IMG/VR virus record: IMGVR_UViG_3300044701_000569 | Location: 186,001-250,000 of that record | Strand: one strand, 5' to 3' | DNA length: 64,000 nucleotides | In this document: in pieces, positions 1-16,112 of the stretch | Position numbering within the stretch: the stretch's first letter is position 1 | Layout: each line of letters opens with the position of its first letter | Notes under the pieces: generated by a model | Databases searched by the model: none | What the model saw: only the letters and a program-made list of their open reading frames with translations | What the model was told of the DNA's origin: nothing | Translations under genes and position numbers: made by a program

Positions 1-660
1 CAAGGTTATGCTGATAAGATTTTAATTAGATACAATTCTAACGGATTATTACTAGACGAAGAAACATTAGAGTTATGGAAAAATTTTAAGAAAGTAAAAT
101 TTGCTGTGAGTATTGATGATATTACTGACAGAAACTATTACATTAGATATCCGTCTGATTGGGATAGATTAGAAAAGAATATGCATATTCTTGATAATAC
201 GCCTAGCAACGTACAAGTAAGTATTGCTACAGCTATTCAAATCCTAAACATAAAAACTCTACCTGAATTAGCAAAGTGGAAAATTACACAGAATTTTAAA
301 AAGATAAATTTTGAAAATGTTTATGAAGGTATACAAGCCGGCGGCGGAATAGTAAACATGCACTTATTGTATATACCTACTTTTTTAAGTATACGATGCT
401 TGCCTAAAGAGGACAAGCAAGAAGTAAGAAAAATATTTGAAGATTTTAGATTATGGCTTCTAGAAAACTATACACAAGATTCAGACTTTTGGAATGTAAA
501 TCCGTATGGGTGGAAGCGTTGGCAGGCTGTTTTAGATTTTATGGACGGTGAAGATCATACACACGAACTACCGGCATTTAAAGAATACATACATAAACTA
601 GATTCTATTAGAAACACAGATTTTAAAACTATTTTTCCGTTATTGAGTCACTTAGTATGA
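1..660 (+). CDS. Radical SAM protein, C-terminal part (5'-truncated by window edge)
   Basis: Frame is open from base 1 (QGYADKILIRYNSNG...KFAVSIDD...YIRYPSDW). It resembles the YATNG/VSIDG/YIRG segments of the rSAM at 2519-3784. Confidence 0.75.
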   Translation, partial: QGYADKILIRYNSNGLLLDEETLELWKNFKKVKFAVSIDDITDRNYYIRYPSDWDRLEKNMHILDNTPSNVQVSIATAIQILNIKTLPELAKWKITQNFKKINFENVYEGIQAGGGIVNMHLLYIPTFLSIRCLPKEDKQEVRKIFEDFRLWLLENYTQDSDFWNVNPYGWKRWQAVLDFMDGEDHTHELPAFKEYIHKLDSIRNTDFKTIFPLLSHLV

Positions 661-1655
661 AACAACTAGCAAGAGTTATTACTACACAAGATCCTACTCT
701 TTTAGATGTGAGATTTTGGCCTACCGATATTTGTAACTTTAGTTGTAACTATTGTTTTCCTGGCAGTGTTCTTAACAAGTATCGTTATCCTAAAAATGTC
801 AACACTGTAATAAAGAATTTTAGAATACTGTTTGATGCATATATGAAACTGCATAACAAGAAAAAGTTTAAGATAAACATAGTAGGGGGAGGTGAACCTA
901 CATTATGGCCGCATCTCTCAGAGTTCTGTCAAGGCATTAAAGAAACACATCCAGTTGAAATACAATTGACTTCTAACGGCAGTAGAACTCTTAGATGGTG
1001 GGAAGAAAATAGTTTATATGTTGATAAAGTAGTATTAAGTTGTCATTACAAAGATGTTGACATTAATAATTTTATTCAAGTAGCTGATTATATTTTTGGA
1101 AGAGGTACAGACATAGGTGCTCTAATGCTTATGGATGCTACGGCTTGGGATACATGTGTTGAATTAATTGAACAAATGAGAAGCAGTAAACATCCTTGGA
1201 TTATACAAGCAAAAGAAGTTGTAGATGCTCCAGGATATGATATAAGAAACTATACAGCAGAACAGCTCAGTTATTTTAAACAACCTTTTAAACGTGTTCC
1301 GGATACTAATTGGATTATTAATAACATACATAGATTTAGAGTACACGAAAGTGTATCGCTTTATGATGATAATTCTGTAGAGCTAGCACTACCTAACTAT
1401 TACATAGTTAATAAATTAAATCAATGGAAGGGTTGGAATTGTAATGTGGCTCTTGAAAATCTAGTTATTACTTATGACGGTACAGTTACAGGTAGTTGTC
1501 AAGAACCTGTGTTTTCTAATTCTAATTTAAATATGTTTGCAGAAGATTTTGAAGAAAAATTTAGCGAAGAATCGCTAAGTTTAAAAACATTAATTTGTCC
1601 AAGAATGAATTGTAGCTGCCAACCAGATACGCACATTACAAAATGGAAGTCTTAG
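657..1655 (+). CDS. Radical SAM protein with C-terminal SPASM/twitch-like Cys cluster
   Basis: CNFSCNYC (CxxxCxxC), GGGEPT, TSNG, and C-terminal CPRMNCSC. Confidence 0.9.
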   Translation: MKQLARVITTQDPTLLDVRFWPTDICNFSCNYCFPGSVLNKYRYPKNVNTVIKNFRILFDAYMKLHNKKKFKINIVGGGEPTLWPHLSEFCQGIKETHPVEIQLTSNGSRTLRWWEENSLYVDKVVLSCHYKDVDINNFIQVADYIFGRGTDIGALMLMDATAWDTCVELIEQMRSSKHPWIIQAKEVVDAPGYDIRNYTAEQLSYFKQPFKRVPDTNWIINNIHRFRVHESVSLYDDNSVELALPNYYIVNKLNQWKGWNCNVALENLVITYDGTVTGSCQEPVFSNSNLNMFAEDFEEKFSEESLSLKTLICPRMNCSCQPDTHITKWKS

Positions 1656-2526
1656 TCAGCGGAATGTCTGCTGCACAAGTACACCAATTTCTATCACAAA
1701 TTATTTCTGATGCTGGAATACGAAAATCTCCTTTATAGATATTTCCTAAACTACCGCCAACCCTGCAAGTAGCTCGGTGTACTTCACCATCCCAGTTAAT
1801 CATTAGACTTTCAATACCTGCACTGCATTTCCAATCTTTAAATTTATTCATATGCAGTTTTATTATATCATTAGCATGATATAGATCTTTGTTGTCAACT
1901 ATGCAATTTTCTTTTGCTGTTGCGTTGTTTTCTAATAGATATTTTAAGTCATTAGGTTGATATCTCATGTCGTCGAACCAATCGTGATCACCTTCGGTCC
2001 ACCGTATTCTTCTTAGTACAAATCCTATGTTGTGACCTGTAAACAGATCAACTGAATACCGCACTCTATCCATGTGTTGATGATGAGCCATAATATTAAC
2101 TTGAAACGGTATTTCACACAACTGAGAAAACAACAGTATAGTCATAGCACACCGTTCCCAATGTTCATTATCGTAGTGTAAACTAAACACATAATGACTT
2201 ACAGGTTGTTTAGCGTACCATTCAGGTGTTCTAGTAGCGTTAGTAGTTACATTGATCCAACTAGCATGTTCTTTAGCATACGCTAACAATTCTTCAATAT
2301 CCGGATGAACACACGGTTCACCACCAGTAAAGCTGATTCTAATTGGCTTATTAATTTCCGTTAATTTGTCTACAGTATTCTTTAAAATAGCTATATCTGT
2401 GTGCGGGCTTATGTTGTCATGAATTTCAGCAGGACAATATCCGCAATCAAAGTTACAACGTTTACCAAGATTCCACTCAATCTTTACAGACTCTTGATGA
2501 GGCCAACGACTAGTTATCTTATACAT
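1636..2526 (-). CDS. Radical SAM protein with SPASM/twitch-like domain (paralog of 657-1655)
   Basis: CNFDCGYC, FTGGEP, TTNA, and C-terminal CDRNWCTC. Confidence 0.9.
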   Translation of the reverse strand: MYKITSRWPHQESVKIEWNLGKRCNFDCGYCPAEIHDNISPHTDIAILKNTVDKLTEINKPIRISFTGGEPCVHPDIEELLAYAKEHASWINVTTNATRTPEWYAKQPVSHYVFSLHYDNEHWERCAMTILLFSQLCEIPFQVNIMAHHQHMDRVRYSVDLFTGHNIGFVLRRIRWTEGDHDWFDDMRYQPNDLKYLLENNATAKENCIVDNKDLYHANDIIKLHMNKFKDWKCSAGIESLMINWDGEVHRATCRVGGSLGNIYKGDFRIPASEIICDRNWCTCAADIPLTKTSIL

Positions 2527-3784
2527 AATTTATAAACTCTGGGTTGGTTGTAAGAAAGTTTTGATTTCTAGTTTTATCTAGTTGCCGATTAAATTCAACA
2601 CAGTCAGGCCAAAATCTACTTAAATCGTTAGCCTTAAGGAAATTAATATTATCTTGTATTTGTTGTAGTGTTACAGTTTTAAGAAGAGCATGTTTTTGCA
2701 CTAACGGATAGTCTAGTATTTTTGTTTTCATAACTTCTAACTTTTCTATTACTTGTTCTTTTAATACACTTGGCAATGTCTGAGCAGATAGTGCTCTAGG
2801 ATAGTTTACACGATGTGAATAAAACACAATACCCATTTCATTTATAAAGTAGTCTATAACTTTATCTATCTGCATTATGTTATTAGCCTGTACAGTAAAT
2901 GCTCCTACTACTCGGCTTACGTTAGGAAATGACTTAAACACTTTAACATTTTCTTCTATTTCGGAAAACTTACCATTACCTCTTATGTATTCATAAACAT
3001 CATGTATACCATCAATACTTACATTTACAGCTATTGATTTAAACTTCGGCCAATAATCATGTATAGTTCTTCCTCCCTTAATTCCTAAGGTCGTACCATT
3101 AGTAGCATATTTTAATTCAATATTAGAACCATAAGGTGCAAGCATATCTAATATTTTATAATGATAAGGATCCATTAGAGGTTCGCCGCCAGCAAATTCT
3201 ACCCTACGAAAGTACGGTAATAACTTTTCAAAACTATTCCACCAGTTATCGCTATTGTCAAAGGGTCCTATATACTGACCAGGTACATCAACTAATTTTT
3301 CAATAGTAGGTATAAGATAATTGTTTTCTTTTTTATAAAATTCTGTAACTTGGTCCCAATCTTTCCAACTAGTACTATCTAGAGGATTGCACATACGGCA
3401 TTTTAAATTGCAAAGATTGTTTAATTTAATTTCCATTGTAGGAAATTCAAAAGGCATTGAAAAATCTTCTAACAGATTTTCTAATGCATTGGGATAAAGA
3501 TTAATTCTAGCTTCTGGAATAACTCCATTAATGTGTCTTTGTCTTAAACTTTCAACGCCCTGATCTTCTAAATCAAAACAGGGTTTACATACTTCTGGTC
3601 TTTCATTATTTAGAACCTGTTGGCGAACTTTGCGCATTTCACTGTTGTTCCACGCTTCTTCTAAACTTTCTTTTTGAATCCACCCTATAGGTTGACTACG
3701 ACAACAGACTTTTATTGCTCCGTCTTCTCTAGTAGCAAGTCCTGTAAAAGGATGCATACAGAAGGTACATGATTTATTTTCCAA
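2519..3784 (-). CDS. Twitch-domain radical SAM protein
   Basis: N-terminal CMHPF..CC..W....M...R.......CKPC auxiliary-cluster domain, then CNLKCRMC, AGGEP, TNG. Probable TTG start at 3784, overlapping the upstream stop (the ORF track starts at 3850). Confidence 0.88.
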   Translation of the reverse strand: MENKSCTFCMHPFTGLATREDGAIKVCCRSQPIGWIQKESLEEAWNNSEMRKVRQQVLNNERPEVCKPCFDLEDQGVESLRQRHINGVIPEARINLYPNALENLLEDFSMPFEFPTMEIKLNNLCNLKCRMCNPLDSTSWKDWDQVTEFYKKENNYLIPTIEKLVDVPGQYIGPFDNSDNWWNSFEKLLPYFRRVEFAGGEPLMDPYHYKILDMLAPYGSNIELKYATNGTTLGIKGGRTIHDYWPKFKSIAVNVSIDGIHDVYEYIRGNGKFSEIEENVKVFKSFPNVSRVVGAFTVQANNIMQIDKVIDYFINEMGIVFYSHRVNYPRALSAQTLPSVLKEQVIEKLEVMKTKILDYPLVQKHALLKTVTLQQIQDNINFLKANDLSRFWPDCVEFNRQLDKTRNQNFLTTNPEFINYV

Positions 3785-4499
3785 GAGCCCACTCCCTTTC
3801 TTTACACCAGAAACATTTTCCGCAAACAGGAACATACTGTCCTGAAACATAAGTTTTATAATCTAAGTCACCAAAAGTTTCAGGATAGTTTATTTTATCG
3901 CCTTCACAGCTTCTAGTCAAGTTTAATAAGTCTGTTATGTTATTTTTAAAATACTGATTTATTATCCAATTTTTTCTTGTATGAATAAAGGGATGACATA
4001 CAGTAACTCCCATGTGTTGTATAATAGGATCTATATGACCCTCATCTCTGTCGTCTAGAGATCCGTCAATTTCAATATCGGGGTTAAGATTAACAGCAGC
4101 AAACCAAGCATCTAGTTGTTCTCTATGAGCAATATATTCGTTATGAGCTCTAAGAATTATTTGATTACCAGATTTTAATTTTCCGTATTCGTCAACAATA
4201 TTAGGACCAGTAGATCCCCACTCTAGTTCTGGAGGTATAAAACCTTCGTGCCTAAAAAAACGATTTTTAAATCTATTTTGAAGCCAATTATACACATCTA
4301 AACTGTTTTGTCTTTGCCAGGGTCTTGTTTTCCAACAACGAATCTGTGTAATGATATGAATATCTGCACTAGTGTTCATACATATTAAATAAGCTAATAA
4401 GGCACTATCTGCCCCACCGCTTAAACTTATTCCTATCCGTGACCAATTAGGATCAATAGGCAAGATTACGTCGTCATATTTAACAGAAGGAATATTCAT
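3774..4499 (-). CDS. QueC-like PP-loop ATP pyrophosphatase (adenine nucleotide alpha-hydrolase)
   Basis: SLSGGADS PP-loop, TRSCE, and CGKCFWC Zn motif. Start set at the ATG 5 nt downstream of TAAATA. Confidence 0.7.
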   Translation of the reverse strand: MNIPSVKYDDVILPIDPNWSRIGISLSGGADSALLAYLICMNTSADIHIITQIRCWKTRPWQRQNSLDVYNWLQNRFKNRFFRHEGFIPPELEWGSTGPNIVDEYGKLKSGNQIILRAHNEYIAHREQLDAWFAAVNLNPDIEIDGSLDDRDEGHIDPIIQHMGVTVCHPFIHTRKNWIINQYFKNNITDLLNLTRSCEGDKINYPETFGDLDYKTYVSGQYVPVCGKCFWCKEREWALGK

Positions 4500-4542
4500 G
4501 CAAGTATTTATCGACATAAACTGCGCAGATAATAAATATATG
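4500..4542. promoter_or_regulatory. Divergent pair of T4-late-like TAAATA promoters
   Basis: TATTTA 4505-4510 (minus) and TAAATA 4533-4538 (plus), each 4-5 nt from an ATG. Confidence 0.65.
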
Positions 4543-5217
4543 ATGCTAACTAAAACAGGTTATACAGTTCCAAAAGAATTAATGGATCGTACATCAATAG
4601 ATCCAAAATCAATTGATGAAAAATTTACCATTAACACTCCTACGGGTAATTTCTTTTATGATCCGTGGGAAATTAAACCAGAATTTAAAAATACGATATG
4701 GAATGAAATATTAGAAACACTACCATATCCTAAAGGTGAAGCTAGACTTTTAGTTTTAGATTCTGGAAAAAACTATTTTGGCCACGCAGACATTGATGAT
4801 AGGTGGCACTTAAATATCTGCGGAACTTATAGTTTTCTTGTAGATTTAGATACAAATATGCTGCACAAAACTGACAATGATATGACATGGTATTTAATGG
4901 ATGCTGGCAGATTACATTCTGCTGCTAATTTTGGAGATAAACCGCGAGTACAGTTAGTAGTTAGAAAACTTTTAAATCGTTCAACAAAGGATTTAGTATC
5001 AATTCAGATAACTCCTACAAAGAAAAGTTTTGACACTAGATACAGATTTGATCAAACACTAAGCCCGTGGCTCAATAGAGCATCTAAAAATGGAGATATT
5101 GATAATTTTCAAATTACTTCTAATGGTGTACAGCTTGATCTTGCTGTAGATAGGATTAATGAATTGTTAGAAGTTTGCGGAACTGAATTTTTAACTACCA
5201 TCTTGGGTACTTGTTAA
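4543..5217 (+). CDS. Asp/Asn beta-hydroxylase-like Fe(II)/2OG oxygenase
   Basis: ARL...HADID (HxD), RLHSAAN (distal His), RVQLV. Start is ATG 4540 or 4543. Confidence 0.7.
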   Translation: MLTKTGYTVPKELMDRTSIDPKSIDEKFTINTPTGNFFYDPWEIKPEFKNTIWNEILETLPYPKGEARLLVLDSGKNYFGHADIDDRWHLNICGTYSFLVDLDTNMLHKTDNDMTWYLMDAGRLHSAANFGDKPRVQLVVRKLLNRSTKDLVSIQITPTKKSFDTRYRFDQTLSPWLNRASKNGDIDNFQITSNGVQLDLAVDRINELLEVCGTEFLTTILGTC

Positions 5218-5746
5218 GCTCAGCATAAAACTTATCAGGAAATAACTCCCATACTGTTTGTTGAGTTCCTCGATAGAATATCTCTTTTATTTTTTTCATT
5301 TGTCCTGATTTTTCCATAGCAGGACCAAATATTCTATGCACTAGGCGTTGTGTGCCTGCAGAATTTTCGTTAGAAGTTATAAACAACTTACTACCTTTAG
5401 GAGCCCAGTCTATACAGGTAGGAATTAAAAACTGACTAGTAACATGCTGATGTGTAATTATTTGGTTAACTGTCCTAAGAGAGGTTACTGGAATTTCATC
5501 ACTGAATGCACAAGTCCTAGCAGCTATACGATAGCAGTTTTCTCCCATTTCGTCAAAAGAGTGTGCTGCAACACTGCCTACAGGTTTGTTATTATAGTAG
5601 AGTATCCATACCTGCCATTCTCTTTCTTTTTTAAAACAATCAACTAGTAGTTTTTGAGAAGCATTATTTTCAAAACCTTTGGCAGCAGCTTTTGTATAAA
5701 ATTCATCTAGATCTAAGTCTTTAGTCCAAGGAACTATTTTATACAT
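5195..5746 (-). CDS. Hypothetical protein, possible GNAT-fold acyltransferase
   Basis: 183 aa ORF. The WILYY..KPVG...RIAARTC pattern is GNAT-like but weak. Confidence 0.35.
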   Translation of the reverse strand: MYKIVPWTKDLDLDEFYTKAAAKGFENNASQKLLVDCFKKEREWQVWILYYNNKPVGSVAAHSFDEMGENCYRIAARTCAFSDEIPVTSLRTVNQIITHQHVTSQFLIPTCIDWAPKGSKLFITSNENSAGTQRLVHRIFGPAMEKSGQMKKIKEIFYRGTQQTVWELFPDKFYAELNKYPRW

Positions 5747-6429
5747 TCGTTTACTCTACTAACAAAGTTGTCCGGGTAATTTGTTCTAAAACTCATCCAG
5801 CAAAGTTTTTCTAGCTGATTTAACGGCGCCGGAGCAGTCCAATTCATTCCTAAAGACTCTACTGTTTGTTTTAGATTGGCCTTTCTGTCTTCACTTAGAT
5901 GACTTTGATGTTTCTCTATACTTATAAATCCTTCATTGTGATGATAGGTAAAGAAATAATTAATACTTTTAAGTTTACCATCTACTATAAAGTAACTGCT
6001 AGGATGCATTGAATACTTGTATAAGTTTAGAGACTTATGGGCTTGAATAATTTCTAACATTTGTTCTTCCCAGTTTGGCAATACCTTAGAGTAATTTTCT
6101 GTAAGGCAACCTGCTTGCTCCCAAAAATCAGATCCGTCAATGTTTAAATAAATCTTTTTTTGAACATAGTCTATATCTAGTATTTGAGGAATATGCATTG
6201 GAAATGAATTGTTCATCACTGTTAAAAATTTAACTTCTCTTTCCCATTTTTCCTCCATAAGTTCAGGATCAATTACCTGATTTTGACCTTTATGGTAATC
6301 TGTGTCGTTATGATACCATTGTACAAATGTTTTCTTATCTTTACTGATAAGACTAGTATAAATTAAGTTGTTTCTACAAAGTCCTTTACCAGGAACATTG
6401 TTGTAGTAGTATTCAAATTCTGTGTTCAT
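5734..6429 (-). CDS. Protein-kinase-like fold protein (atypical)
   Basis: WEREVKFL, IPQILDID, LYKYSMHPSSYFIVDGKLKSINY. Similar to 9748-10311; no canonical HxD. Confidence 0.5.
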   Translation of the reverse strand: MNTEFEYYYNNVPGKGLCRNNLIYTSLISKDKKTFVQWYHNDTDYHKGQNQVIDPELMEEKWEREVKFLTVMNNSFPMHIPQILDIDYVQKKIYLNIDGSDFWEQAGCLTENYSKVLPNWEEQMLEIIQAHKSLNLYKYSMHPSSYFIVDGKLKSINYFFTYHHNEGFISIEKHQSHLSEDRKANLKQTVESLGMNWTAPAPLNQLEKLCWMSFRTNYPDNFVSRVNECIK

Positions 6430-6437
6430 AATAGTAA

Positions 6438-7739
6438 TTATGCTACTAGATTATTAGAACGATTTAGATTGAAAGGCATTTCAAACCACACACTATTTGT
6501 AGAATCAAGTAGTCTTTGAATTTTTTCTCTAGTTGAAATAATTTCTTCTTTTGAATATATTACATGTGTAAATGGATACACAGTTAAAATTGTGCTTGTA
6601 CCTAATAGTGTATTTTCTTCAAAATGAGTTTCAAGTTTGCTAAAATCTTTTATAATATCACATTCGATAAATTCAACAGTAACAGACTGTTTAAATTCTT
6701 TCCAATTAGCAAGAATTTTTTCTCTAACAAGATCTCTAGTATCAACCGAATTTTTTATATCAATGTCAAACGTAGGTTCAATTGGTAAGTTACAAGTTTT
6801 AGCATAATCCTGCATGAACGAATCGTAGTCGTTGCCGTCCCATTCTGTGTATAGTTTTTTCTTAAAGTTTAAATTATGTAAGTTCTTATCATACAACACA
6901 ATATTTTTAGCTCCAGAATTTACTGCACACAGCTCTCCAAGAAAACCTGTAGCAGGACAAATTACTTTTTTTGCTGGCACTGACGGAGCAAATTCATATT
7001 GCCATCCGTTAAGGACATTAAATTTTAAAACCTGTTGTATTATTTTAATAAACAGTTCTTGAGAGTCGTCTAACCCTTCTACTAGTTCTATTTTTTTAAG
7101 TGCTTCTGCAAATGCTTCAGTACTCTTTTTTGGATACAGAAAACCTCTACTAGGTAGTACAACATCTTTTAAGTAATCATTAGCTGTTTTAGGATAGCGC
7201 CATTCTTGATCCCAATTACGTACCTCAAAATTATTTTTAAGACATTCTTCGATAACTCGTGTTCCAAATTTTAAATCTCTGTTTACAGTCTTTCCGCCTA
7301 ATGTTATGTACAGCGGAGCATGACCATCGTGCATGTCTTCGTAACTGCGAATTAAATTGAATCCTTGATCCTTGCCACCATTAAATTCTAATTTTTTAAA
7401 TGCAGCAGTTCTCAATATAAAAAATTGTTCGTGAAAGTACGGGGTAGTATCATAATCATATTGAAGTAAGTTTGCAATTAAACCTACAGTCTCTGGTATA
7501 GAATGCATCTTGTTATAGATGTGATCTCTTTCTACTATCACAGTACCTGCAGACGCTACTACAAGAAACTCTGCTGAAGTTAAATAATCGTTTATTTCAT
7601 TATAGGATGATAATGTGTGGACAGGATATTCGCCTATGTTGAGAATATCGATAAATGCTTGCGTAATCTGAAGCATCTTTTCATCCAACCAATCATCACT
7701 AGAAAAGCTCGGTACTATAAGAAAATTGACCTTGTGCAT
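6438..7739 (-). CDS. Hypothetical protein (433 aa), possibly a two-domain transferase
   Basis: Long ORF in operon. The C-terminal PATGFLG...VLYD...IECDI resembles a Rossmann/methyltransferase pattern, weakly. Confidence 0.5.
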   Translation of the reverse strand: MHKVNFLIVPSFSSDDWLDEKMLQITQAFIDILNIGEYPVHTLSSYNEINDYLTSAEFLVVASAGTVIVERDHIYNKMHSIPETVGLIANLLQYDYDTTPYFHEQFFILRTAAFKKLEFNGGKDQGFNLIRSYEDMHDGHAPLYITLGGKTVNRDLKFGTRVIEECLKNNFEVRNWDQEWRYPKTANDYLKDVVLPSRGFLYPKKSTEAFAEALKKIELVEGLDDSQELFIKIIQQVLKFNVLNGWQYEFAPSVPAKKVICPATGFLGELCAVNSGAKNIVLYDKNLHNLNFKKKLYTEWDGNDYDSFMQDYAKTCNLPIEPTFDIDIKNSVDTRDLVREKILANWKEFKQSVTVEFIECDIIKDFSKLETHFEENTLLGTSTILTVYPFTHVIYSKEEIISTREKIQRLLDSTNSVWFEMPFNLNRSNNLVA

Positions 7740-8355
7740 TTTGTTCCTTTATTGCTAACTCAAATAAATTTTTCCATTTAGGCGTAGAATCATAATGATG
7801 TACTATAAGATGATATCGATCTTCGTTACTGTCATTTTTAATAGAATGGGTATAGCTAATGTTCATAGCATAAGCATCACCCGGTTTAAATTCTAACGAT
7901 TCTCCATCCTCCCAATACCATTTACAATTTTGAGGGTTTGTTATTGCTATGTTTATAGCACCTAGTACTGGATATTCTGTGTCTTTATGTGGTTCTATAT
8001 AACCACCTGGTTCTAGTAACATAAATCTAACCCTAGCATAACTAGAGCTAGGATAAACGTTCTTAAGCCATTCAACAGTTACTGGACATTTCTCAGCTAT
8101 GTCTGTATACTGCATATATGGTGCGGCATCTCTAGCTGTATTAAACTCTTTGTATTGATCCCATGCGTATGGTTCTTCGCTGCTCTTACCTATAATAGGT
8201 AATGAATACCATCCTTTTGTTTTATATGTTGATCTATATTCAACAAACTTAGATCTTAAAGCACTAGCTTCTTGTGCAATAAGTTCGTGAGGAAAATCTA
8301 AATTTAATTTTAGATATTTGGCATTACTTAAAAAATATTCTCTACCTTCAAACAT
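7699..8355 (-). CDS. Asp/Asn beta-hydroxylase family Fe(II)/2OG oxygenase
   Basis: RVRFMLLEPGGYIEPHKD, THSIKNDSNEDRYHLIV. Confidence 0.85.
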   Translation of the reverse strand: MFEGREYFLSNAKYLKLNLDFPHELIAQEASALRSKFVEYRSTYKTKGWYSLPIIGKSSEEPYAWDQYKEFNTARDAAPYMQYTDIAEKCPVTVEWLKNVYPSSSYARVRFMLLEPGGYIEPHKDTEYPVLGAINIAITNPQNCKWYWEDGESLEFKPGDAYAMNISYTHSIKNDSNEDRYHLIVHHYDSTPKWKNLFELAIKEQNAQGQFSYSTELF

Positions 8356-8394
8356 GAAATATTTACCTTTAAAATTGTAGGCATAAATATTTTC
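8356..8394. promoter_or_regulatory. Divergent pair of TAAATA late promoters, quasi-palindromic
   Basis: TATTTA 8360-8365 and TAAATA 8384-8389, 4 and 5 nt from their ATGs. Confidence 0.65.
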
Positions 8395-9210
8395 ATGATT
8401 AGAGGAATTAATAACAAACCGTACGTAAGTCTAGATCCTTATATTGACATAGAAGGATTTAAACAACTTCATCCTGAAATTTGCAAAGGCTTTGCACAAG
8501 CTAGAGACTATGCTAAAGAAGGAACTTGGATGCAGCCAGGATTTGACCCCAAAGACTGTAGCTATATTGTAGATTGGAAACCTATTTACAAAGCATTTGA
8601 AGAATATCAAAAATTGCCTGATACCGATCCTATTAAAATACATGGCAATGAAATATTTCCTAATGATTTTAAAGATTATAAACAGCGTAATTTGTTTACA
8701 CGTTACTTAAAAAGCACGTTAGGTGCTAATGACCCTTATATCTATTATTTTCTTTGGAATGAAGGCGACTGGAATGAGCGTAATGCTGAACGTCAACGTA
8801 CTGAAGAGAGTAAATTCTTTCCAGGTGTAGTTAAGTGGGTTGAAGGGTTACAGGAACAAGGTATAATTGATCGTATAGGTCGCGTTATATTTTTTCACTG
8901 TGATCATAACGGTAAAGCATTTGAACATAGAGATTTAGATGCTAAAAATGGTATACATACTAATAATCAGTATACACCTCATAACAATGAATTCATCCAT
9001 ATACGCTATAGAACTAAAAGAGGGTTCTATATATGGGATCCAGACAGTCAGAATAAACACTATCTAAATTGCCATGCATCTTTTTGGAATGATCAAGATT
9101 GGCATGGCGGCGAAGAGTCTAAAGAAGTTGAATACGGACTGCGTATTGATTGTAAATTTAGTTTAGATTTAAAGAAGAAGTTAGGTATTGATCACCTAAC
9201 TCACTATTAA
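8395..9210 (+). CDS. Putative Fe(II)/2OG oxygenase (double-stranded beta-helix)
   Basis: GRVIFF...EHRD (HxD), DWHGG, GLRID. Confidence 0.6.
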   Translation: MIRGINNKPYVSLDPYIDIEGFKQLHPEICKGFAQARDYAKEGTWMQPGFDPKDCSYIVDWKPIYKAFEEYQKLPDTDPIKIHGNEIFPNDFKDYKQRNLFTRYLKSTLGANDPYIYYFLWNEGDWNERNAERQRTEESKFFPGVVKWVEGLQEQGIIDRIGRVIFFHCDHNGKAFEHRDLDAKNGIHTNNQYTPHNNEFIHIRYRTKRGFYIWDPDSQNKHYLNCHASFWNDQDWHGGEESKEVEYGLRIDCKFSLDLKKKLGIDHLTHY

Positions 9211-9755
9211 CCCCAAATATTAAAAAGATACTTTGGAGTAAGTCCTGCGTTGGCCCCAGCATGCCAACTTTTCCTGTCAGGCCATTCATAGACATTACCT
9301 TGTGCTTCGTTGTAAAGACAGGTATTTTCTACTATTACAATGTGTCCGGGTCTTGGAATATCAATATGACAATGAAATCTTCTAATTGTACCTTTAGCAT
9401 TAAGAGTATTTTCATCATCAGTGATGTCCCAGTGCCAGGGAGCTACATCTCCCGGTAGTACTTTACTGATCCAGCAGTTTATATAACTGTCCATGCCAAT
9501 AAAGTCCATAAACTTTTCTACTACTTCTTGGGGAAATTGTCTTCCTGGGAAATGCATTTCCCAGCTAGCATTGCCGCCTTCTGCCTTCATTTTATATCCA
9601 GCATTCCTTAGCGGTCTAGCTACTTCTTCTACACCCTCTACTGCATAACCTACATCGTGTCTAGGTCCTAAGTAACCAGGCATACTATTATCAACTGCCT
9701 CTATTACTTCGTTCCAATTGATAATGTGATTGCAATTACCTATAAATTTAAGCAT
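9207..9755 (-). CDS. Putative Fe(II)/2OG oxygenase (AspH-like)
   Basis: PGDVAPWHWD, RFHCHI, WHAGANAG. Confidence 0.65.
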   Translation of the reverse strand: MLKFIGNCNHIINWNEVIEAVDNSMPGYLGPRHDVGYAVEGVEEVARPLRNAGYKMKAEGGNASWEMHFPGRQFPQEVVEKFMDFIGMDSYINCWISKVLPGDVAPWHWDITDDENTLNAKGTIRRFHCHIDIPRPGHIVIVENTCLYNEAQGNVYEWPDRKSWHAGANAGLTPKYLFNIWG

Positions 9756-10311
9756 TCAGCGAAATAGGCCAATCGCCAGCATTGCTGTCTATAGAACGTC
9801 TGTAACTTGTTACTATGTCTAGGTATCCGTCAGTAAATTTGAACCTATCCCAGTTTCTAATTACATCATTAACTGTAGTGAGAGGAATCTTTTCGTCGCC
9901 TTTGCAACAGCCATAGAGATCGTGGATCTTTAATTTGTTATCCTTAACATACACTGTATGCGGATAAAAATTTAGTTTATAAAGATTATTACTTTCTAGA
10001 TCCTGTAGTAAGGATTTTAATTGCTGTACCCAATCGCTAGGCATCTCTCTACCAAAAAACAGTAAATGGCTCAAACTACTGTCATACCATTTGAAAGTTA
10101 TTTTTCTGTTGCCTTCGTCAACTGATTCTATTTCAGGAGCGTAATCTTTGCCTGCAATTAAATCTAATCCGTATAATTCTCTGCGGAACCAAAATTCCTC
10201 AAAGAATGTCATAGAATATGAAGTACTGTTATACTCGGCTTTATAAACATCGTTAGGAGTGCCGGGATATCCGTCACTACTGTATTTGTAAAAATCTTTA
10301 AATGTTTCCAT
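9748..10311 (-). CDS. Protein-kinase-like fold protein (atypical)
   Basis: FRRELYGL, APEIESVD, LKIHDLY. Paralog of 5734-6429. Confidence 0.5.
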   Translation of the reverse strand: METFKDFYKYSSDGYPGTPNDVYKAEYNSTSYSMTFFEEFWFRRELYGLDLIAGKDYAPEIESVDEGNRKITFKWYDSSLSHLLFFGREMPSDWVQQLKSLLQDLESNNLYKLNFYPHTVYVKDNKLKIHDLYGCCKGDEKIPLTTVNDVIRNWDRFKFTDGYLDIVTSYRRSIDSNAGDWPISLNA

Positions 10312-10348
10312 GTTTATATTTAACCCTATTCTAACTCACCCGCCTTAA

Positions 10349-12073
10349 TTAAGGCTCAACAGCCATTTGTCTCCAACCACCGCCTAGATAAACTACCATC
10401 TGCTGTTTAGCTGGAGCACCAATGCCTAATGGATCCCATCCGCTTACAGAGTCACCGTCAGCAATAGCTACCATACCGTTGACTGGTGTTGCTGGTGCAG
10501 CACTTAACACTGCTAGTTTGGCAAATCCGTTGATGTCAAGAGTTGCTTCTGCTTCATAACCTAGTGTGTGATTAATTGAAGTATAACCTCGAGAATCAAT
10601 ATTAACGCCTTTAGGATTTAAAGGATTACCGTCAGTAAATGTTAATAAAGAAATACTTCCAGGTACTTCTCCTTCGTCAACTACGGCATTAGGATCAACA
10701 CTGCGTAGAATGATGCTGGATAGCGTGTAACTTGCAGTGCCTTCACCGGTAAGTGATATGCCGTCGTAACCTAGTGCAGCATCAATCTTAATTGTATCAC
10801 CAACTTGAATTGCTGTAGGAGCACTAAGTGTTCCACGTGATGATCTAAATGTTTCGCCTGGGCCAAAGAACCCTTGAGTAATACCGTTAGTGATATTAAC
10901 AAAATCACCGTCTGGGCATAGTCTTATAATTTGAGTAGTTCTTGTTGGATCTGTATTTTGTATTCTAATTGGAATAGATGATTCGATAATACTGTTACTA
11001 AAAGACATCGTTGATGTTCTTAAGATCGAGTTTACACCATCAACTAGTACTGTAGAATCATCACCAAAGAATGATCCTTTAAATGCAGAAGCTTCAACTT
11101 CGCCGTCAAACACTGCACTACCATTAACATCTAGAGCAGCTCTAGCAAAAAACTCTAAAGGTTGATTAATAGCAGTAAATCCTCTAGAGTCTATTATTAG
11201 ACCTTTATATGCACTAGTATTGCTATCTGCAAATGTTAATAGCTGTATGCTACCTGGAATTTCTCCTGCAGCAACTGACACATTATAATCTACACTGTGT
11301 CTAATAGCACTTGAAAGTGTATATACAGGATCGCCCTCACCATCAACTGATACGCCGTCGTAGCCTAGAGCAACATCAATTTTAATTGCATCACCAACTG
11401 TAAGATTAGTTGGTGCAGCTAGTGTCCCTCGAGACGCTCTAAAACTTTCACCTGGTCCTAAAAATCCTTGGCTTATACCCGTTGTAATAGCAGAGAATCC
11501 ACCGTCAGGCGCTGTTCGTATAAAGTTTAGAGTTACTGCTGGGTTATCGTGTTTGAATACTAATGCTGCAGAAGTACTGTTAACAGTAAATCCGGAAATG
11601 TCTAATATACCTGTAGAAAGAGTTTTTGTAGTAGAATTTACTAAAACTGTACTATCTGTAGCTTCTACATCTCCAATGTGCGTGCCGTCTGTATCACCTG
11701 TAACGTTACCAATTACATTACCATTAAGCGTACCATAAAAGTTTGATGTTACTGAGTCAACAACAATTTGATCAGTTGCATTAGTAATATCAATGTGATA
11801 ATCACCACCAGGTGTAAAAGCACCTTCATCTGCTGCTACAAACGCTGTACCGTTAAATTTTAGTATTTGTCCTGTTAGCGCAGGAAGTGTAAGATCTACG
11901 TCTAACAGATCATTAAGAGATTGAGCTATGCCAGAGTTTACTACAATACCGCCAACAGTGCTACCGTCACCTACCCACAAACGTTTAGTATCTGTAGTAT
12001 AGACAAGCTCGCCTTCTGTGGGCGTAATTAGTAATCTTTGTGCATTAGTTCCGCGTCTGAGACGTAAGGCCAT
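10349..12073 (-). CDS. Tail fibre / virion appendage protein with Mtd-N / hyaluronidase-N-like anchor
   Basis: N-terminal LRLRRGT...EGELVYTTDTKRLWVGDG; G/T/S-rich beta composition; TAAATA and GGGAG upstream. Confidence 0.75.
   Translation of the reverse strand: MALRLRRGTNAQRLLITPTEGELVYTTDTKRLWVGDGSTVGGIVVNSGIAQSLNDLLDVDLTLPALTGQILKFNGTAFVAADEGAFTPGGDYHIDITNATDQIVVDSVTSNFYGTLNGNVIGNVTGDTDGTHIGDVEATDSTVLVNSTTKTLSTGILDISGFTVNSTSAALVFKHDNPAVTLNFIRTAPDGGFSAITTGISQGFLGPGESFRASRGTLAAPTNLTVGDAIKIDVALGYDGVSVDGEGDPVYTLSSAIRHSVDYNVSVAAGEIPGSIQLLTFADSNTSAYKGLIIDSRGFTAINQPLEFFARAALDVNGSAVFDGEVEASAFKGSFFGDDSTVLVDGVNSILRTSTMSFSNSIIESSIPIRIQNTDPTRTTQIIRLCPDGDFVNITNGITQGFFGPGETFRSSRGTLSAPTAIQVGDTIKIDAALGYDGISLTGEGTASYTLSSIILRSVDPNAVVDEGEVPGSISLLTFTDGNPLNPKGVNIDSRGYTSINHTLGYEAEATLDINGFAKLAVLSAAPATPVNGMVAIADGDSVSGWDPLGIGAPAKQQMVVYLGGGWRQMAVEP
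10526..11657 (-). repeat. Tandem ~200-aa internal duplication in the tail fibre gene
   Basis: DSTVLV...GI(S/T)QGF.GPGE.FR.SRGTL.APT...GD.IKID.ALGYDG...YTLSS...G(E)xPGSI.LLTF.D...IDSRG...LD(V/I)NG occurs twice, about 597 nt apart. Confidence 0.9.
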
Positions 12074-12104
12074 CTTTGTAACTCCCGGTATAGTATGTTA
12101 CAAG

Positions 12105-12110
12105 TATTTA
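12105..12110 (-). promoter_or_regulatory. TAAATA late promoter for the tail fibre gene
   Basis: CATAAATAC about 30 nt upstream of the ATG at 12073. Confidence 0.6.
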
Positions 12111-12124
12111 TGCCTTTTTAGGAT

Positions 12125-12436
12125 TTACCTACGACGTTTCATGAAGCGTTTTGTACGATCCTGTACGTCTTTTTTAACTTTTGCTGTATTAAGATTAAAG
12201 TCTACGCTTTCAATTAGCTCGTCGTGTTCTTTAAAGAACTCGTCTAAAATCTCTTCTACAGATTCTATAGTAATTCCACGTTTTCTACGTAGATCAATAT
12301 TCCACTGACGCCCGTCTTTAAAGTGTACATTTACACCTTGCAAATACTCTATTGGTATTGCTTTTATTTCAACATCTTCAAATATTTCGGGCCAATGATC
12401 TATTATTTCTTGCGGTAGCTTATTATTTTTAGGCAC
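12125..12436 (-). CDS. Hypothetical phage protein
   Basis: 103 aa ORF tightly coupled to its neighbour. Confidence 0.7.
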   Translation of the reverse strand: MPKNNKLPQEIIDHWPEIFEDVEIKAIPIEYLQGVNVHFKDGRQWNIDLRRKRGITIESVEEILDEFFKEHDELIESVDFNLNTAKVKKDVQDRTKRFMKRRR

Positions 12437-13025
12437 TTGCTTCAGTTGATTTCTTCTTGGTAGGGCTCAGCTTTTCAGCTTCTTCTCTAAGACGCTTTGC
12501 TTCCTTGTATAGTCTATCTGCATCACTACGATACTTAGTTGCAAGAGCTTCGTCCGTTAGAGGTTCTTCGTTTACTGCAAGTGCTTCAAACGTTTCTGTA
12601 GCAGCTGATACAGCTTTTGGTGCTTCATTAGCATTAGCTGGCTTAACTGCTAGATCAGCAACTGATACACCTCTTTGTTTAGCTACAATCTCGTTAAGTT
12701 CCTTAAGAGAAATAGTAGTCTGCATATTTGGAGTCATTTCAACCATACTGGTGTTGATCTTGATCATCTTACCTGTAGCATGGAATGCAGCCAACATAAT
12801 ACGCCCGTCCGGAAGTCTAGTTCTAGCCATAGCATCAGCTAGCTCATTAGACTGTTGTCCAGCATCGGATTCAACCAGCTTCATAAGAGCATCGTGTTCA
12901 TCTGCCATAAGATTTTCTGTAGTAACTACAATACAATTATCCGGATCATTTGGTACTACACGGTATGCAACTATTACTTTACGTTTTGTTGTAGTAATAC
13001 GACCTACATGTTTGATATTAGCCAT
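12429..13025 (-). CDS. Hypothetical phage protein
   Basis: 198 aa ORF with AAGGA upstream. Confidence 0.75.
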   Translation of the reverse strand: MANIKHVGRITTTKRKVIVAYRVVPNDPDNCIVVTTENLMADEHDALMKLVESDAGQQSNELADAMARTRLPDGRIMLAAFHATGKMIKINTSMVEMTPNMQTTISLKELNEIVAKQRGVSVADLAVKPANANEAPKAVSAATETFEALAVNEEPLTDEALATKYRSDADRLYKEAKRLREEAEKLSPTKKKSTEASA

Positions 13026-13038
13026 TTTATTTTTCCTT

Positions 13039-13272
13039 TTAGTTAGCTTGTGGTGCAGCTACTGCCTTTAGGAAAGTGTCTAGCTTGGTATAAACAGTTC
13101 CTACAGCAGTCATCTCATTGGGCTTAAAAGCACCTCTAGAGCTTGCTACATCAATAATGCTTCTTAGTGCTTGAAGATCCTGTACAGTTAGATCAGGTCC
13201 TTGTTCCTGCTTTGTTTGGGTAGCAGTGGTCTCAGTCTTCTGTGCAGTTTCGTTCTTTTGTTCGTCGCTCAT
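13039..13272 (-). CDS. Hypothetical phage protein
   Basis: 77 aa ORF with AGGAG SD. Confidence 0.75.
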   Translation of the reverse strand: MSDEQKNETAQKTETTATQTKQEQGPDLTVQDLQALRSIIDVASSRGAFKPNEMTAVGTVYTKLDTFLKAVAAPQAN

Positions 13273-13308
13273 ATGAATCTCCTATAATATTATATATGCG
13301 CAGTTTAT

Positions 13309-14854: not shown

Positions 14855-14884
14855 AGCATGTTCCTTATTCAGTGCCTATACTGT

Positions 14885-14912
14885 ATAATAACATATTTAC
14901 AGGATATGTCAA
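14885..14912 (-). promoter_or_regulatory. Sigma70-like promoter with TAAATA in the spacer
   Basis: TTGACA-16-(TGt)TATTAT. Confidence 0.65.
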
Positions 14913-14922
14913 CCTAGAATAG

Positions 14923-14950: not shown

Positions 14951-14956
14951 GACTCT

Positions 14957-16109: not shown

Positions 16110-16112
16110 GAG

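Follow-up and report, generated by a model that had tools for sequence, protein, structure and literature searches.

The analyzed window, a stretch of 64,000 nucleotides covering bases 186001-250000 of a 357.6 kb viral contig (IMG/VR record IMGVR_UViG_3300044701_000569), holds the right-hand third of a roughly 39 kb island with late-type promoter motifs in an uncultured freshwater jumbo phage distantly related to T4. At least 13 radical-SAM (rSAM) enzymes, several hydroxylases, and sugar-transferase-like, methyltransferase-like and kinase-like proteins are encoded between two tail-fibre-like genes. The island most likely decorates virion fibres or a sugar attached to them (probability about 0.4, substrate unproven), whereas a classical peptide-antibiotic (RiPP) system is not supported. 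The first-pass annotation described, in about 10 kb, four rSAM genes, four AspH-like or 2OG oxygenases, two kinase-like proteins, a PP-loop enzyme, a GNAT-like ORF and a 433-aa unknown, in short cassettes of alternating orientation that start with a TAAATA-type motif, abut a tail-fibre gene and continue off the left edge. This observation is real and understated, since only about a third of the island was seen; the cluster runs about 27 kb further left.

Gene content of the window part

All 14 ORFs were confirmed at the following coordinates:
1..660 (+), C-terminal 219 aa of TWI2, a 470-aa N-terminal-twitch rSAM enzyme whose start lies left of the window
657..1655 (+), rS332, an rSAM enzyme with a C-terminal Cys cluster, last gene of the long + strand operon
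1636..2526 (-), rS296, an rSAM enzyme with a C-terminal twitch-like Cys cluster
2519..3850 (-), TWI1, an N-terminal-twitch rSAM enzyme, the most conserved gene of the island
3774..4517 (-), QueC-like PP-loop ATPase, likely true start M7 at 4499
4498..5217 (+), ox239, an AspH/Cpz10-type Fe(II)/2OG hydroxylase, likely true start M16 at 4543
5195..5746 (-), gn183, a conserved protein without an assigned fold
5734..6429 (-), kin231, a minimal protein with a predicted protein-kinase fold
6438..7739 (-), U433, a two-domain protein with a GT-A-like N-terminal half and a class-I methyltransferase-like C-terminal half
7699..8355 (-), AspH218, an Asp/Asn beta-hydroxylase-family oxygenase leading the AspH218-U433-kin231-gn183 cassette
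8395..9210 (+), ox271, an AspH-like oxygenase, a single-gene cassette
9207..9755 (-), cup182, a cupin-type HxD..H oxygenase
9748..10311 (-), kin187, a paralog of kin231
10349..12073 (-), fibre-like protein of 574 aa with a conserved tail-fibre N-terminus, an internally duplicated body and one Cys

The four rSAM genes all encode CX3CX2C, located at residue 26 in rS332 and residue 24 in rS296. Three of them hit Pfam Radical_SAM above cutoff, rS332 (PF04055, 7.8e-9), rS296 (PF04055, 3.7e-11) and TWI1, the latter with SPASM at residues 31-91 and Radical_SAM at residues 144-309. TWI1 is a full member of NF033640 (326.5 bits against a cutoff of 170) and is 76-86% identical in more than 300 viral contigs. 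The TWI2 fragment is open from base 1 and matches NF033640 positions 237-397; its full gene, at 13191-14603 of locus L009, shows Radical_SAM and N-terminal SPASM hits. In a comparison of 85 loci, orthologs were found in 81 for TWI2 and in 85 for rS296 (median 61% identity).

The four oxygenases are supported to unequal degrees. AspH218 hits PF05118 (1.6e-14) and, weakly, LpxO. In a profile search against PDB, ox239 matches the Cpz10 beta-hydroxylase 7V4F (1.2e-13) and shows invariant H96, D98, H140 and R150. ox271 is AspH-like only through a protein-atlas search (feature score 0.95 to PF05118 clusters, with structure hits), with invariant H178, D180 and H237. cup182 has invariant H108, D110 and H165 but only a weak Cpz10 hit (0.027); f8 and X181, two other proteins of the analysis, are its paralogs (hhalign to f8 99.6%).

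The two kinase-like proteins are paralogs (hhalign 99.4%), and a protein-kinase fold is predicted for both (AF2 pLDDT 92, 91.9 for kin231; Foldseek E about 1e-6). Foldseek hits of kin231 comprise Fes, SYK, Aurora, TTK and Bud32/PRPK, and its profile matches TTK (1.5e-5), while no Pfam hit was obtained in 22 family members. The PP-loop protein carries an invariant SGGxDS motif (SGGADS), a C-terminal CxxCxxC and a QueC-like PHROG hit (phrog_1550, 7.5e-6). U433, the 433-aa unknown, looks like a glycosyltransferase fused to a methyltransferase, based on atlas structure hits to GT34-type clusters and feature hits to Methyltransf_24 and AspH-fused clusters; it is a homolog of the protein f18 (hhalign 98.8%) and is fused to an AspH domain in locus L091. 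The GNAT assignment of gn183, present in 34 of 85 loci, found no support in Pfam, PHROG or NCBIfam, and the best PDB hit is a GNAT at E = 0.42.

The fibre-like protein carries an Mtd_N N-terminus (8.6e-10) shared with annotated tail fibres and 40% identical to those of phages Minorna and AV102. Its internal repeat is 57% identical over 154 aa.

Late-type promoter motif

The motif claimed in the first-pass annotation was confirmed in relaxed form and is statistically supported, although the exact T4 octamer TATAAATA is absent from the window. ATAAATA is depleted in the window (11 copies against 27.5 +/- 4.6 expected), and all 11 copies are sense-oriented and lie 4-45 nt upstream of ATGs. They head the fibre gene, three cluster cassettes (ox271, ox239 and the PP-loop cassette), the endolysin operon and a gene for an Ig-domain giant protein. 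The motifs of the cluster are:
4505..4538, a divergent pair of ATAAATA motifs, 4511-4505 (-) for the PP-loop/TWI1/rS296 cassette, 5 nt before the ATG at 4499, and 4532-4538 (+) for ox239
8383..8389 (+), ATAAATA before ox271; its divergent partner TAAATA at 8365-8360 (-) precedes AspH218
12105..12111 (-), ATAAATA 32 nt upstream of the fibre ATG, followed by a GGGAG Shine-Dalgarno sequence

TAAATA is located 4 nt before the ATG of AspH218, here and in 7 of 7 orthologs, and 5 nt before the ATG of kin187. In relatives, TAAATA is conserved at ox239 starts in 62 of 68 and at PP-loop starts in 35 of 67, and the same motif as at the fibre gene lies at -36 to -41 in 7 of 7 orthologs of the fibre group f40. 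It is absent at operon-internal genes. Strong sigma-70 sites occur only outside the cluster. The late assignment rests on analogy with T4-type promoters and on the endolysin association; in several cassettes the motif lies only 4-6 nt from the ATG, which is unusual for T4 late promoters, and two further + strand ATAAATA copies left of the window lie inside rSAM genes, more than 200 nt from a start.

Linkage to fibre and tail genes

An Mtd_N-type variable protein, homologous to the fibre-like protein, occupies the same boundary position in 15 of the 21 loci that reach it; in the other 6, this slot holds an unrelated 250-aa protein. The left end of the island carries a fibre-like 497-aa gene with a hint of an IMC (intramolecular-chaperone cleavage) domain and the same motif. 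A core module, consisting of a fibre-like gene (FIB), the small proteins p121 and p285/p287, the GT-A-fold protein X227, an N-twitch rSAM and the methyltransferase MT202, is conserved next to fibre or tail genes across many phages, and the order FIB-p3xx-p121-p285-p287-X227-rSAM recurs in at least 12 more distant contigs. In the cultured Ralstonia phage RsoM2USA, the core sits just downstream of tail-sheath and baseplate genes: ORF355-347 lie directly downstream of the MS-confirmed structural protein ORF356, the tail sheath ORF359 and the baseplate genes (PMC8504454). An absence of linkage to structural genes in relatives had been named beforehand as a refuting condition; linkage was found to hold, including in this cultured phage.

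Links to carbohydrate chemistry

For X227, a GT-A fold is suggested by Foldseek hits to HddC, WrtF, RmlT and SunS (2e-4), an assignment that rests on moderate scores (TM about 0.4). Relatives replace X397/X181 with an SDR epimerase/dehydratase and a UDP-Glc/GDP-Man dehydrogenase inside the rSAM operon, and RsoM2USA ORF358 has an SDR-like N-terminus. The island of this genome itself has no recognizable sugar-activating enzyme; those occur only in relatives. Cellular homologs are concentrated in Bdellovibrionota, and a bacterial array carries a methyltransferase and a GT1/GT28 glycosyltransferase between rSAM genes. None of the about 35 island proteins has a TM-like segment.

Proposed role of the island

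The region is best explained as the right-hand part of a hypervariable fibre-tailoring island. The analysis itself establishes that two fibre-like genes bracket co-directional, overlapping cassettes of soluble enzymes, namely at least 13 rSAM proteins (many with an N-terminal twitch domain), 5 AspH/cupin oxygenases, GT-A-fold proteins, methyltransferase-like proteins, a QueC-like PP-loop ATPase and kinase-fold proteins, that the cassette-leading and fibre genes share the ATAAATA motif of the endolysin operon, and that the core module is conserved beside fibre or tail genes. The remainder is inference. It is supposed that the enzymes are made late, together with the fibres, and act in the cytoplasm on newly made fibre or tail proteins, or on a nucleotide-activated sugar that the GT-A-fold enzymes then transfer to those proteins. 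AspH-type hydroxylases would create or tailor acceptor positions; the AspH218-U433 fusion in L091 argues that hydroxylation is coupled to glycosyl or methyl transfer. The rSAM paralogs would carry out radical tailoring, perhaps epimerization, oxidation or C-methylation, and the methyltransferases would cap. More speculatively, the PP-loop enzyme may amidate a carboxylate, e.g. a uronate made by the sugar dehydrogenase seen in relatives. Swapping cassettes between close relatives would give each phage a different decoration on its receptor-binding apparatus.

This reading remains tentative, as no modification of any virion protein has been observed and thirteen rSAM enzymes are far more than any known glycan pathway uses. 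Furthermore, homologous rSAM arrays sit in Bdellovibrionota chromosomes with no phage-type fibre N-terminus within 8 kb, so the chemistry does not require a phage fibre. The interpretation in the first-pass annotation, late post-translational decoration of virion proteins or attached glycans, or a RiPP-like system, is supported in part: virion-linked tailoring of the protein or its glycan remains the best reading, but the RiPP-like label is not supported. Its premise that SPASM/twitch rSAMs and AspH enzymes point to peptide substrates does not hold here, since the closest solved relative of one hydroxylase is a small-molecule nucleoside-antibiotic enzyme (PMC9814697), and the rSAM genes match peptide and sugar/nucleotide enzymes equally weakly. 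The NDP-sugar enzymes and GT-fold proteins spliced into the same operons in relatives point to carbohydrate chemistry.

Alternative explanations

Host-envelope remodelling, in which the island makes or alters a host surface polysaccharide (LPS O-chain or capsule) to block superinfection or change recognition, is possible but less likely. Such a role was proposed for the host recognition cluster of pelagimyophages, where fibres, glycosyltransferases, UDP-glucose dehydrogenase and rSAM cassettes are described and O-chain modification is favored (PMC7029224); the NDP-sugar enzymes of relatives and the weak LpxO hit would agree with it. However, TM-like segments are lacking, no Wzx, Wzy, Gtr or undecaprenyl-type enzyme was found in the island, the late-type motif fits superinfection exclusion poorly, and in RsoM2USA the core sits inside the tail/baseplate operon. 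A late-stage pathway for a sugar- or nucleoside-derived small molecule (e.g. an envelope-biosynthesis inhibitor or a signalling or defence compound) is likewise possible but less likely. The Cpz10 match, the GT1/GT28-type glycosyltransferase (typical of natural-product pathways) in the bacterial array, the arrays in bacteria without phage fibres, and the QueC-like and numerous rSAM enzymes, typical of metabolite pathways, speak for it. On the other hand, no scaffold-forming enzyme, transporter or resistance gene was found, synteny with fibre and tail genes is tight and widely conserved, and the extreme cassette variability between close relatives resembles receptor-binding loci more than a metabolite pathway.

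A RiPP-like system, or direct rSAM cross-linking or epimerization of a peptide or virion protein without any sugar, is unlikely. SPASM/twitch domains, AspH-type hydroxylases and a protein-kinase fold all occur in peptide or protein modification, and weak NCBIfam and PDB hits include SkfB, YydG, PqqE and AlbA. These matches cover only the generic rSAM core, though, and are no better than those to viperin, BtrN, DesII and MoaA. Genes overlap or are 37-40 bp apart at the few gaps inside the cluster, so no precursor ORF fits in the window part; domain searches of the island returned no PqqD/RRE (RiPP recognition element), leader protease or ABC exporter; and the single Cys of the fibre rules out thioether chemistry on it. 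The NDP-sugar enzymes and GT-fold proteins inside the same operons also argue against a sugar-free system. DNA hypermodification of a 7-deazaguanine or sugar-based type is very unlikely. The QueC-like ATPase and weak QueE-like PHROG hits of two rSAM genes would fit, and kinase-like and transferase-like proteins occur in thymidine hypermodification clusters, but no TGT/DpdA, FolE, QueD or hydroxymethylase hit was found in the 43 kb examined, the cluster carries the late-type motif rather than early promoters, and it is linked to fibre and tail genes, not to the replication genes on its right.

Comparison with known systems

The host recognition cluster, or hypervariable tail-fibre island, of pelagimyophages and cyanomyophages (Zaragoza-Solas et al. 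2020, PMC7029224) likewise varies cassette-wise between close relatives. The phage studied here is a roughly 358 kb Atu_ph07/Rak2-like jumbo phage (PolB 45% to Atu_ph07), not a pelagimyophage, and its island is flanked on the right by replication genes instead of VrlC-gp14. The expansion to at least 13 rSAM genes and the defined core module are not described there, and no function has been shown in either case.

SPASM/twitch rSAM enzymes, be it RiPP maturases such as SkfB, PqqE and AlbA or sugar enzymes such as BtrN, share the CX3CX2C core and an auxiliary Cys-rich twitch/SPASM domain. In NF033640, the twitch domain is N-terminal, there is no RRE, no member is characterized, and no solved structure lies closer than E = 0.01. 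Cpz10 of caprazamycin biosynthesis (PDB 7V4F; PMC9814697), a small AspH-family Fe/2OG hydroxylase, is the closest solved relative of ox239, but acts on an aminoacyl-glycyluridine small molecule in an actinomycete pathway, and no other caprazamycin genes are present here.

In virion glycosylation systems, such as mycobacteriophage capsid/tail glycosylation and chlorovirus capsid glycans, phage- or virus-encoded glycosyltransferases and methyltransferases are encoded next to structural genes, expressed late, and act in the cytoplasm on virion proteins. Those systems are not known to include rSAM or AspH enzymes, and glycosylation in the present case is inferred only from folds and neighbors. In collagen lysyl hydroxylase-glycosyltransferases (LH3/PLOD; mimivirus L230), the oxygenase family differs (PLOD-type, not AspH-type); no collagen repeats occur in the 574-aa fibre, and U433 carries an additional methyltransferase-like half. 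There, a 2OG oxygenase is fused or coupled to a GT-A domain, so that hydroxylation creates the glycosylation site on a fibrous structural protein, which parallels the AspH218-U433 pair and its 740-aa fusion in L091.

Source and extent of the island

The window has no near match among deposited phages, a megablast search against phages returning no hit for the region. Its family-B DNA polymerase (32011-34701, minus strand; the longest ORF starts with TTG) is 45% identical to that of Agrobacterium phage Atu_ph07 and about 43% identical to those of the Rak2/121Q group, and the sequence is therefore assigned to an uncultured jumbo phage of the wider T4 superfamily. A scan of viral contigs with the best-conserved gene returned a 100% match on IMGVR_UViG_3300044701_000569 (357,559 bp), with window base 1 corresponding to contig base 186001. 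Two further scans extended the reading leftwards to contig base 158580, so that the statements below on the genome refer to 107 kb of the 357.6 kb contig (bases 158580-250000). Rfam and tRNA scans of the window gave no hit.

The first-pass annotation described a cluster of radical SAM (rSAM) enzymes, oxygenases and kinase-like proteins beside a tail-fibre gene, and this observation is confirmed and enlarged, with all ORFs found at the positions assigned to them. The genes of the window part are as follows.

1-660, open from base 1: the C-terminal half of TWI2, a 470-aa rSAM enzyme with an N-terminal twitch domain
657-1655 (+): rS332, rSAM enzyme, last gene of the long plus-strand array
1636-2526: rS296, rSAM enzyme
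2519-3850: TWI1, N-terminal-twitch rSAM enzyme
3774-4517: PP-loop protein, QueC-like
4498-5217: ox239, oxygenase related to the Cpz10 beta-hydroxylase
5195-5746: gn183, for which a GNAT identity had been proposed
5734-6429: kin231, protein with a predicted protein-kinase fold
7699-8355: AspH218, Asp/Asn beta-hydroxylase-family protein
8395-9210: ox271, AspH-like protein
9207-9755: cup182, cupin-type protein
9748-10311: kin187, paralog of kin231
10349-12073 (-): 574-aa fibre-like protein, with an internal tandem duplication of about 155 residues (57% identity) at 10439-11626 (-)

A further gene of the cluster encodes U433, the 433-aa protein listed as unknown in the first-pass annotation.

Radical SAM genes

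Three complete window genes (657-1655, 1636-2526 and 2519-3850) score 36-44 bits against the Pfam Radical_SAM model (PF04055; gathering cutoff 29.5). TWI1 and TWI2 belong to NCBIfam NF033640, a family of rSAM proteins whose twitch/SPASM domain is N-terminal. TWI1 reaches 326.5 bits against the required 170, with SPASM at residues 31-91 preceding Radical_SAM at residues 144-309, whereas the TWI2 fragment at the left edge scores 114.6 bits only because it is truncated. Single-sequence searches of TWI1 and rS296 against the PDB matched only the generic rSAM core and carried no signal for a substrate class.

The cluster is three times larger than originally seen. Left of the window, one long plus-strand array of overlapping genes ends at window base 1655 and encodes, from left to right:

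a 497-aa fibre-like protein with a weak Peptidase_G2/IMC (intramolecular-chaperone cleavage) hit
the paralogs p313 and p330, then p121, the paralogs p285 and p287, and p469
a 307-aa paralog of X227 (a protein with a predicted GT-A fold)
rSAM proteins of 464 and 445 aa, a 286-aa protein, then rSAM proteins of 318, 438, 332, 431 and 404 aa
a 408-aa protein and three tandem 276-aa paralogs (9174-11654 of locus L093, an extension left of the window), the latter found only in this genome and its duplicate contig
X227, the rSAM proteins rS357 and rS327, X181 (a cupin-type paralog of cup182), X397, the methyltransferase-like MT202, TWI2 and rS332

In total, 13 rSAM genes are present. CX3CX2C is kept in all 12 that were checked, and the remaining one (8626-10020 of locus L095, left of the window) is assigned by Pfam and a family HMM. 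The island spans about 38.8 kb, from the 497-aa gene to the 574-aa fibre-like gene, and no island protein has a transmembrane-like segment.

Oxygenases and other enzymes

The four oxygenases are supported to different degrees. AspH218 scores 54.5 bits against PF05118 (cutoff 22.6), and ox239 is assigned through a profile match to Cpz10 (PDB 7V4F) at 1.2e-13 together with an invariant HxD..H..R. ox271 is AspH-like by protein-atlas features and structure and keeps HxD..H, while cup182 keeps an invariant HxD..H and is a paralog of two further cupin families; the assignment of these two rests on the iron triad plus atlas or weak hits only.

kin231 and kin187 are paralogs. An AF2 model of the former (pLDDT 92) shows a bilobal protein-kinase fold with Foldseek probability 1.0 to many kinases and to Bud32/PRPK, although a Pfam search of 22 family members gave no meaningful hit. 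The family-invariant residues (Y24, E65, P81, K92, W120, K138, P143) do not obviously include an HRD or DFG Asp, and kin187 has an HDLYG motif where kin231 has SINYF; the designation kinase-like refers to the predicted fold alone. The PP-loop protein has an invariant SGGxDS motif and a QueC-like C-terminal CxxCxxC. U433 resembles viral GT34-type transferases in its N-terminal half and Methyltransf_24 proteins in its C-terminal half. Support for a GNAT identity of gn183 is lacking, since its best hit in a profile search against the PDB was a GNAT at E = 0.42. The same kind of search returned nothing for the PP-loop, U433/f18 (f18 being a U433 homolog), X227 or ox271 families.

Promoter motif and expression

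The first-pass annotation had placed a TAAATA-type late motif at the cassette starts. The exact T4 late octamer TATAAATA is absent from the window (0 against 8 expected) and occurs once left of it, before the p330 gene. In its relaxed form (NATAAATA), by contrast, the motif is found upstream of structural and lysis genes. The heptamer ATAAATA is depleted about 2.5-fold (11 copies against 27.5 +/- 4.6 in Markov shuffles), and all 11 copies (4511-, 4532+, 8383+, 12111-, 13312-, 16856-, 37238-, 41140-, 51043-, 59924- and 63479-; consensus about CGATAAATAY) lie in sense orientation 4-45 nt upstream of an ATG. Ten of these ATGs, all but the one at 41140, open listed ORFs. The genes so marked include the 574-aa fibre gene, ox271, ox239 and the PP-loop cassette, the alignments indicating starts at 4543 and 4499 for the last two. 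AspH218 and kin187 have TAAATA 4-5 nt before their ATG. Outside the cluster, the motif also marks, among others:

48862-51023 (-): lysis-type operon of two unknown proteins (184 and 238 aa) followed by a GH19 plus PG_binding_1 endolysin (292 aa)
59930-63454 (-): 1174-aa protein with a He_PIG Ig-like domain and no phage homolog by tblastn, which may be a virion decoration or adhesin protein

In relatives, the motif precedes fibre-like genes of family f40 in 7 of 7 cases at -36 to -41, TAAATA precedes 62 of 68 ox239 starts and 7 of 7 AspH218 starts, and operon-internal genes have none. The signal is therefore real, and it is probably the late promoter of this phage, but its lateness is inferred from the T4 analogy and from the association with endolysin and fibre genes. 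Several copies lie only 4-6 nt from the ATG, and two plus-strand copies left of the window lie inside rSAM genes. The only strong sigma-70-type sites in 1-17000 lie outside the cluster, where they precede the genes of the following pair.

13583-16045 (-): a MoxR-type AAA ATPase and a DUF2201 metallopeptidase/VWA protein, each with a near-consensus extended sigma-70 promoter (14912, 16109), and a strong terminator-like hairpin at 14950-14924

Sequence of this phage was found in a single RNA library, a freshwater metatranscriptome. It holds five 100%-identical fragments, located in AspH218, kin187, the fibre gene (two) and the fibre gene's 5' end with its upstream region, with the highest depth over the fibre gene. 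These are contigs without strand or transcript ends, and DNA carry-over cannot be excluded.

Comparative genomics

In 85 related loci the conserved core consists of TWI1 (about 82% identity), rS296, TWI2, the PP-loop gene, MT202, ox239, rS357, rS332, rS327, cup182, the kinase-fold genes and ox271. AspH218, U433, X397 and X181 are accessory, as are five further rSAM families found only in relatives. In some relatives an SDR epimerase/dehydratase and a UDP-Glc/GDP-Man dehydrogenase replace X397/X181 inside the rSAM operon. In several relatives (loci L012, L046, L057, L059, L069, L071 and L073) a 269-aa MUG113/T5orf172-like gene, probably a mobile element of the homing-endonuclease type, is inserted between the overlapping TWI1 and rS296 genes.

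Of 21 loci that reach the right boundary, 15 carry a protein with the same tail-fibre N-terminus but a variable body, and the other 6 carry an unrelated 250-aa gene that also has the motif. AspH218 plus U433 occurs only with Mtd_N-type fibres (8 loci), but 7 Mtd_N loci lack it, so that no strict coupling of fibre type and accessory module exists. The DUF2201 gene, followed by three or four small ORFs, forms the conserved right flank of the island in relatives. In the present genome the right flank comprises MoxR, DUF2201, an exonuclease and PolB. The window also encodes a 748-aa double-AAA Clp/ATP-dependent-protease-like protein (41806-44052, minus strand; phrog_4871, 6.7e-255).

In at least 12 more distant contigs (36-62% identity, 30-360 kb) the gene order is kept: a fibre-like gene, p3xx, p121, p285, p287, X227, then one to many N-twitch rSAM genes. 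The only cultured phage with the module is the Ralstonia jumbo phage RsoM2USA (215.9-223.6 kb, ORF347-355), in which all module genes are annotated as hypothetical. ORF355 (p313/p330-like), ORF354 (p121), ORF353/352 (p285/p287), ORF350 and ORF348 (X227-like), ORF349 (N-twitch rSAM) and ORF347 (MT202-like) lie co-directionally just downstream of ORF356 (a structural protein), ORF359 (the tail sheath) and ORF361-364 (structural and baseplate proteins), of which ORF356, 359 and 361 were identified in virion bands by mass spectrometry (PMC8504454). The nearby ORF358 begins with an SDR-type GxxGxxG motif.

The best cellular homologs of the N-twitch rSAM family are concentrated in the predatory Bdellovibrionota (36 of the 78 best loci), including chromosome-scale contigs with up to seven copies in a row. 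Some of these arrays carry MT202, X227, AspH218, f18 or PP-loop homologs, and no phage-type fibre N-terminus lies within 8 kb. One array is flanked by EF-G and dCTP deaminase genes and holds a class-I methyltransferase and a GT1/GT28-type glycosyltransferase between rSAM genes; the triad of N-twitch rSAM, methyltransferase and glycosyltransferase therefore recurs in phages and bacteria. In two Tara/JGI marine contigs (loci L089/L090), a distant N-twitch rSAM lies between a NAD_synthase-type PP-loop gene and an AdoMet decarboxylase gene, in a viral-looking contig that also carries ribosomal proteins L11 and S21, IF3, ClpX, SufBD and NifU, and the pairing of PP-loop and N-twitch rSAM thus recurs outside this phage group.

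Predicted substrate class

X227 models as a GT-A fold, with Foldseek hits only to sugar nucleotidyl- and glycosyl-transferases, and it keeps a DxD motif; a protein-atlas search with X227 returned only unnamed viral clusters, and p285 has more than 1,300 unnamed homologs with no Pfam annotation. AspH218 and U433 overlap in the window and are fused into one 740-aa protein (5688-7910 of locus L091) in a Pseudobdellovibrionaceae MAG contig (JAYVPG010000050.1) that also carries TWI1, TWI2, rS327 and rS357 orthologs. The fusion, a 'Rosetta-stone' link between the hydroxylase and the GT/MT-like protein, lies inside another array of 8 rSAM genes. The rSAM genes resemble peptide maturases no more than they resemble viperin, BtrN, DesII or MoaA, and the nearest solved relative of an island hydroxylase, Cpz10, acts on a nucleoside small molecule.

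Nothing supports a classical RiPP system, the first-pass annotation having considered a RiPP-like one. Genes of the window part overlap or are 37-40 bp apart and leave no room for a precursor gene, and no conserved small ORF was found there, the part left of the window having been checked for ORFs of at least 70 aa only. No RRE/PqqD-like domain, leader protease or exporter was hit by Pfam, NCBIfam or PHROG models in any of about 35 proteins, although remote RREs could escape HMM searches. The fibre-like protein has one Cys and no EGF-like motif. A 7-deazaguanine DNA modification cluster, in which QueC is accompanied by QueD, QueE, FolE and a DpdA/TGT transglycosylase, is likewise not supported, since only the weak QueC-like PP-loop hit was obtained and no PTPS, GTP cyclohydrolase or TGT hit was found in 43 kb. 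The Mtd_N match had also suggested a diversity-generating retroelement, which requires a TR/VR repeat pair and a reverse transcriptase, but no repeat longer than 32 nt occurs in 1-13000, and only the N-terminal 36 residues match Mtd.

Proposed function

The interpretation given in the first-pass annotation is partly supported: late, fibre-linked tailoring holds as the preferred, though tentative, reading (probability about 0.4), a RiPP system does not, and a sugar connection is likely. In this view, the island is co-expressed late with the fibre genes, and its soluble enzymes would tailor fibre or tail proteins, or a nucleotide-sugar-derived group that GT-A-fold enzymes attach to them. AspH-type enzymes would hydroxylate in a step coupled to U433, rSAM paralogs would perform radical tailoring, methyltransferases would cap, the PP-loop enzyme would possibly amidate a carboxylate, and cassette turnover would diversify the decoration. 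The gene content, the bracketing by two fibre-like genes, the distribution of the motif and the conservation of the core beside fibre or tail genes are established by the sequence comparisons, whereas late timing, the substrates and every enzymatic step are inferred. The main evidence against this model is that no modification has been observed, that the island of this genome lacks sugar-activating genes and that the bacterial arrays have no phage-type fibres nearby.

A more far-reaching possibility, which is regarded as unlikely but compatible with the data, is a previously unrecognised virion-maturation chemistry. The conserved fibre-adjacent module (p121, p285/p287, X227 with its predicted GT-A fold, N-twitch rSAM, methyltransferase), expanded here to at least 13 rSAM enzymes plus AspH hydroxylases, would install radical-derived, strain-specific modifications on tail-fibre proteins or their glycans and so set host range or defence evasion. 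The same enzyme toolkit would be used chromosomally by predatory Bdellovibrionota, perhaps on their own prey-recognition structures; the concentration of cellular homologs in this group is as yet an unexplained link.

If the island really tailors receptor-binding fibres, phage host recognition would depend on enzyme-installed chemistry as well as on fibre sequence, a layer invisible to sequence-based host-range prediction. It would also give a first biological role to the uncharacterised family NF033640, which has more than 10,000 representative clusters at 50% identity and, like the p285, p121, X227 and kinase-fold families, has no member with a known function. The module occurs in hundreds of freshwater and marine jumbo-phage contigs and in one cultured phage, RsoM2USA, so that the question is directly accessible to testing.

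Comparison with known systems

Literature searches on phage rSAM expansions found no paper beyond the description of the 'host recognition cluster' of pelagimyophages (PMC7029224), which is the closest known system. This cluster combines tail fibres, glycosyltransferases, sugar enzymes and rSAM cassettes, with AspH as a core gene, and its authors read it as host O-chain modification. The present island shares the character of a hypervariable region with tail-fibre genes plus GT and rSAM cassettes. The pelagimyophage cluster lies between VrlC and gp14 in the structural module; here, replication genes such as PolB and an exonuclease were found to the right, the left flank having been read to contig position 158.6 kb only, and in RsoM2USA the core lies in the tail module. 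The island described here belongs to a different phage lineage and has a far larger rSAM expansion and a definable conserved core module, and it lacks membrane enzymes and carries late-type promoter motifs, which together favour a virion target.
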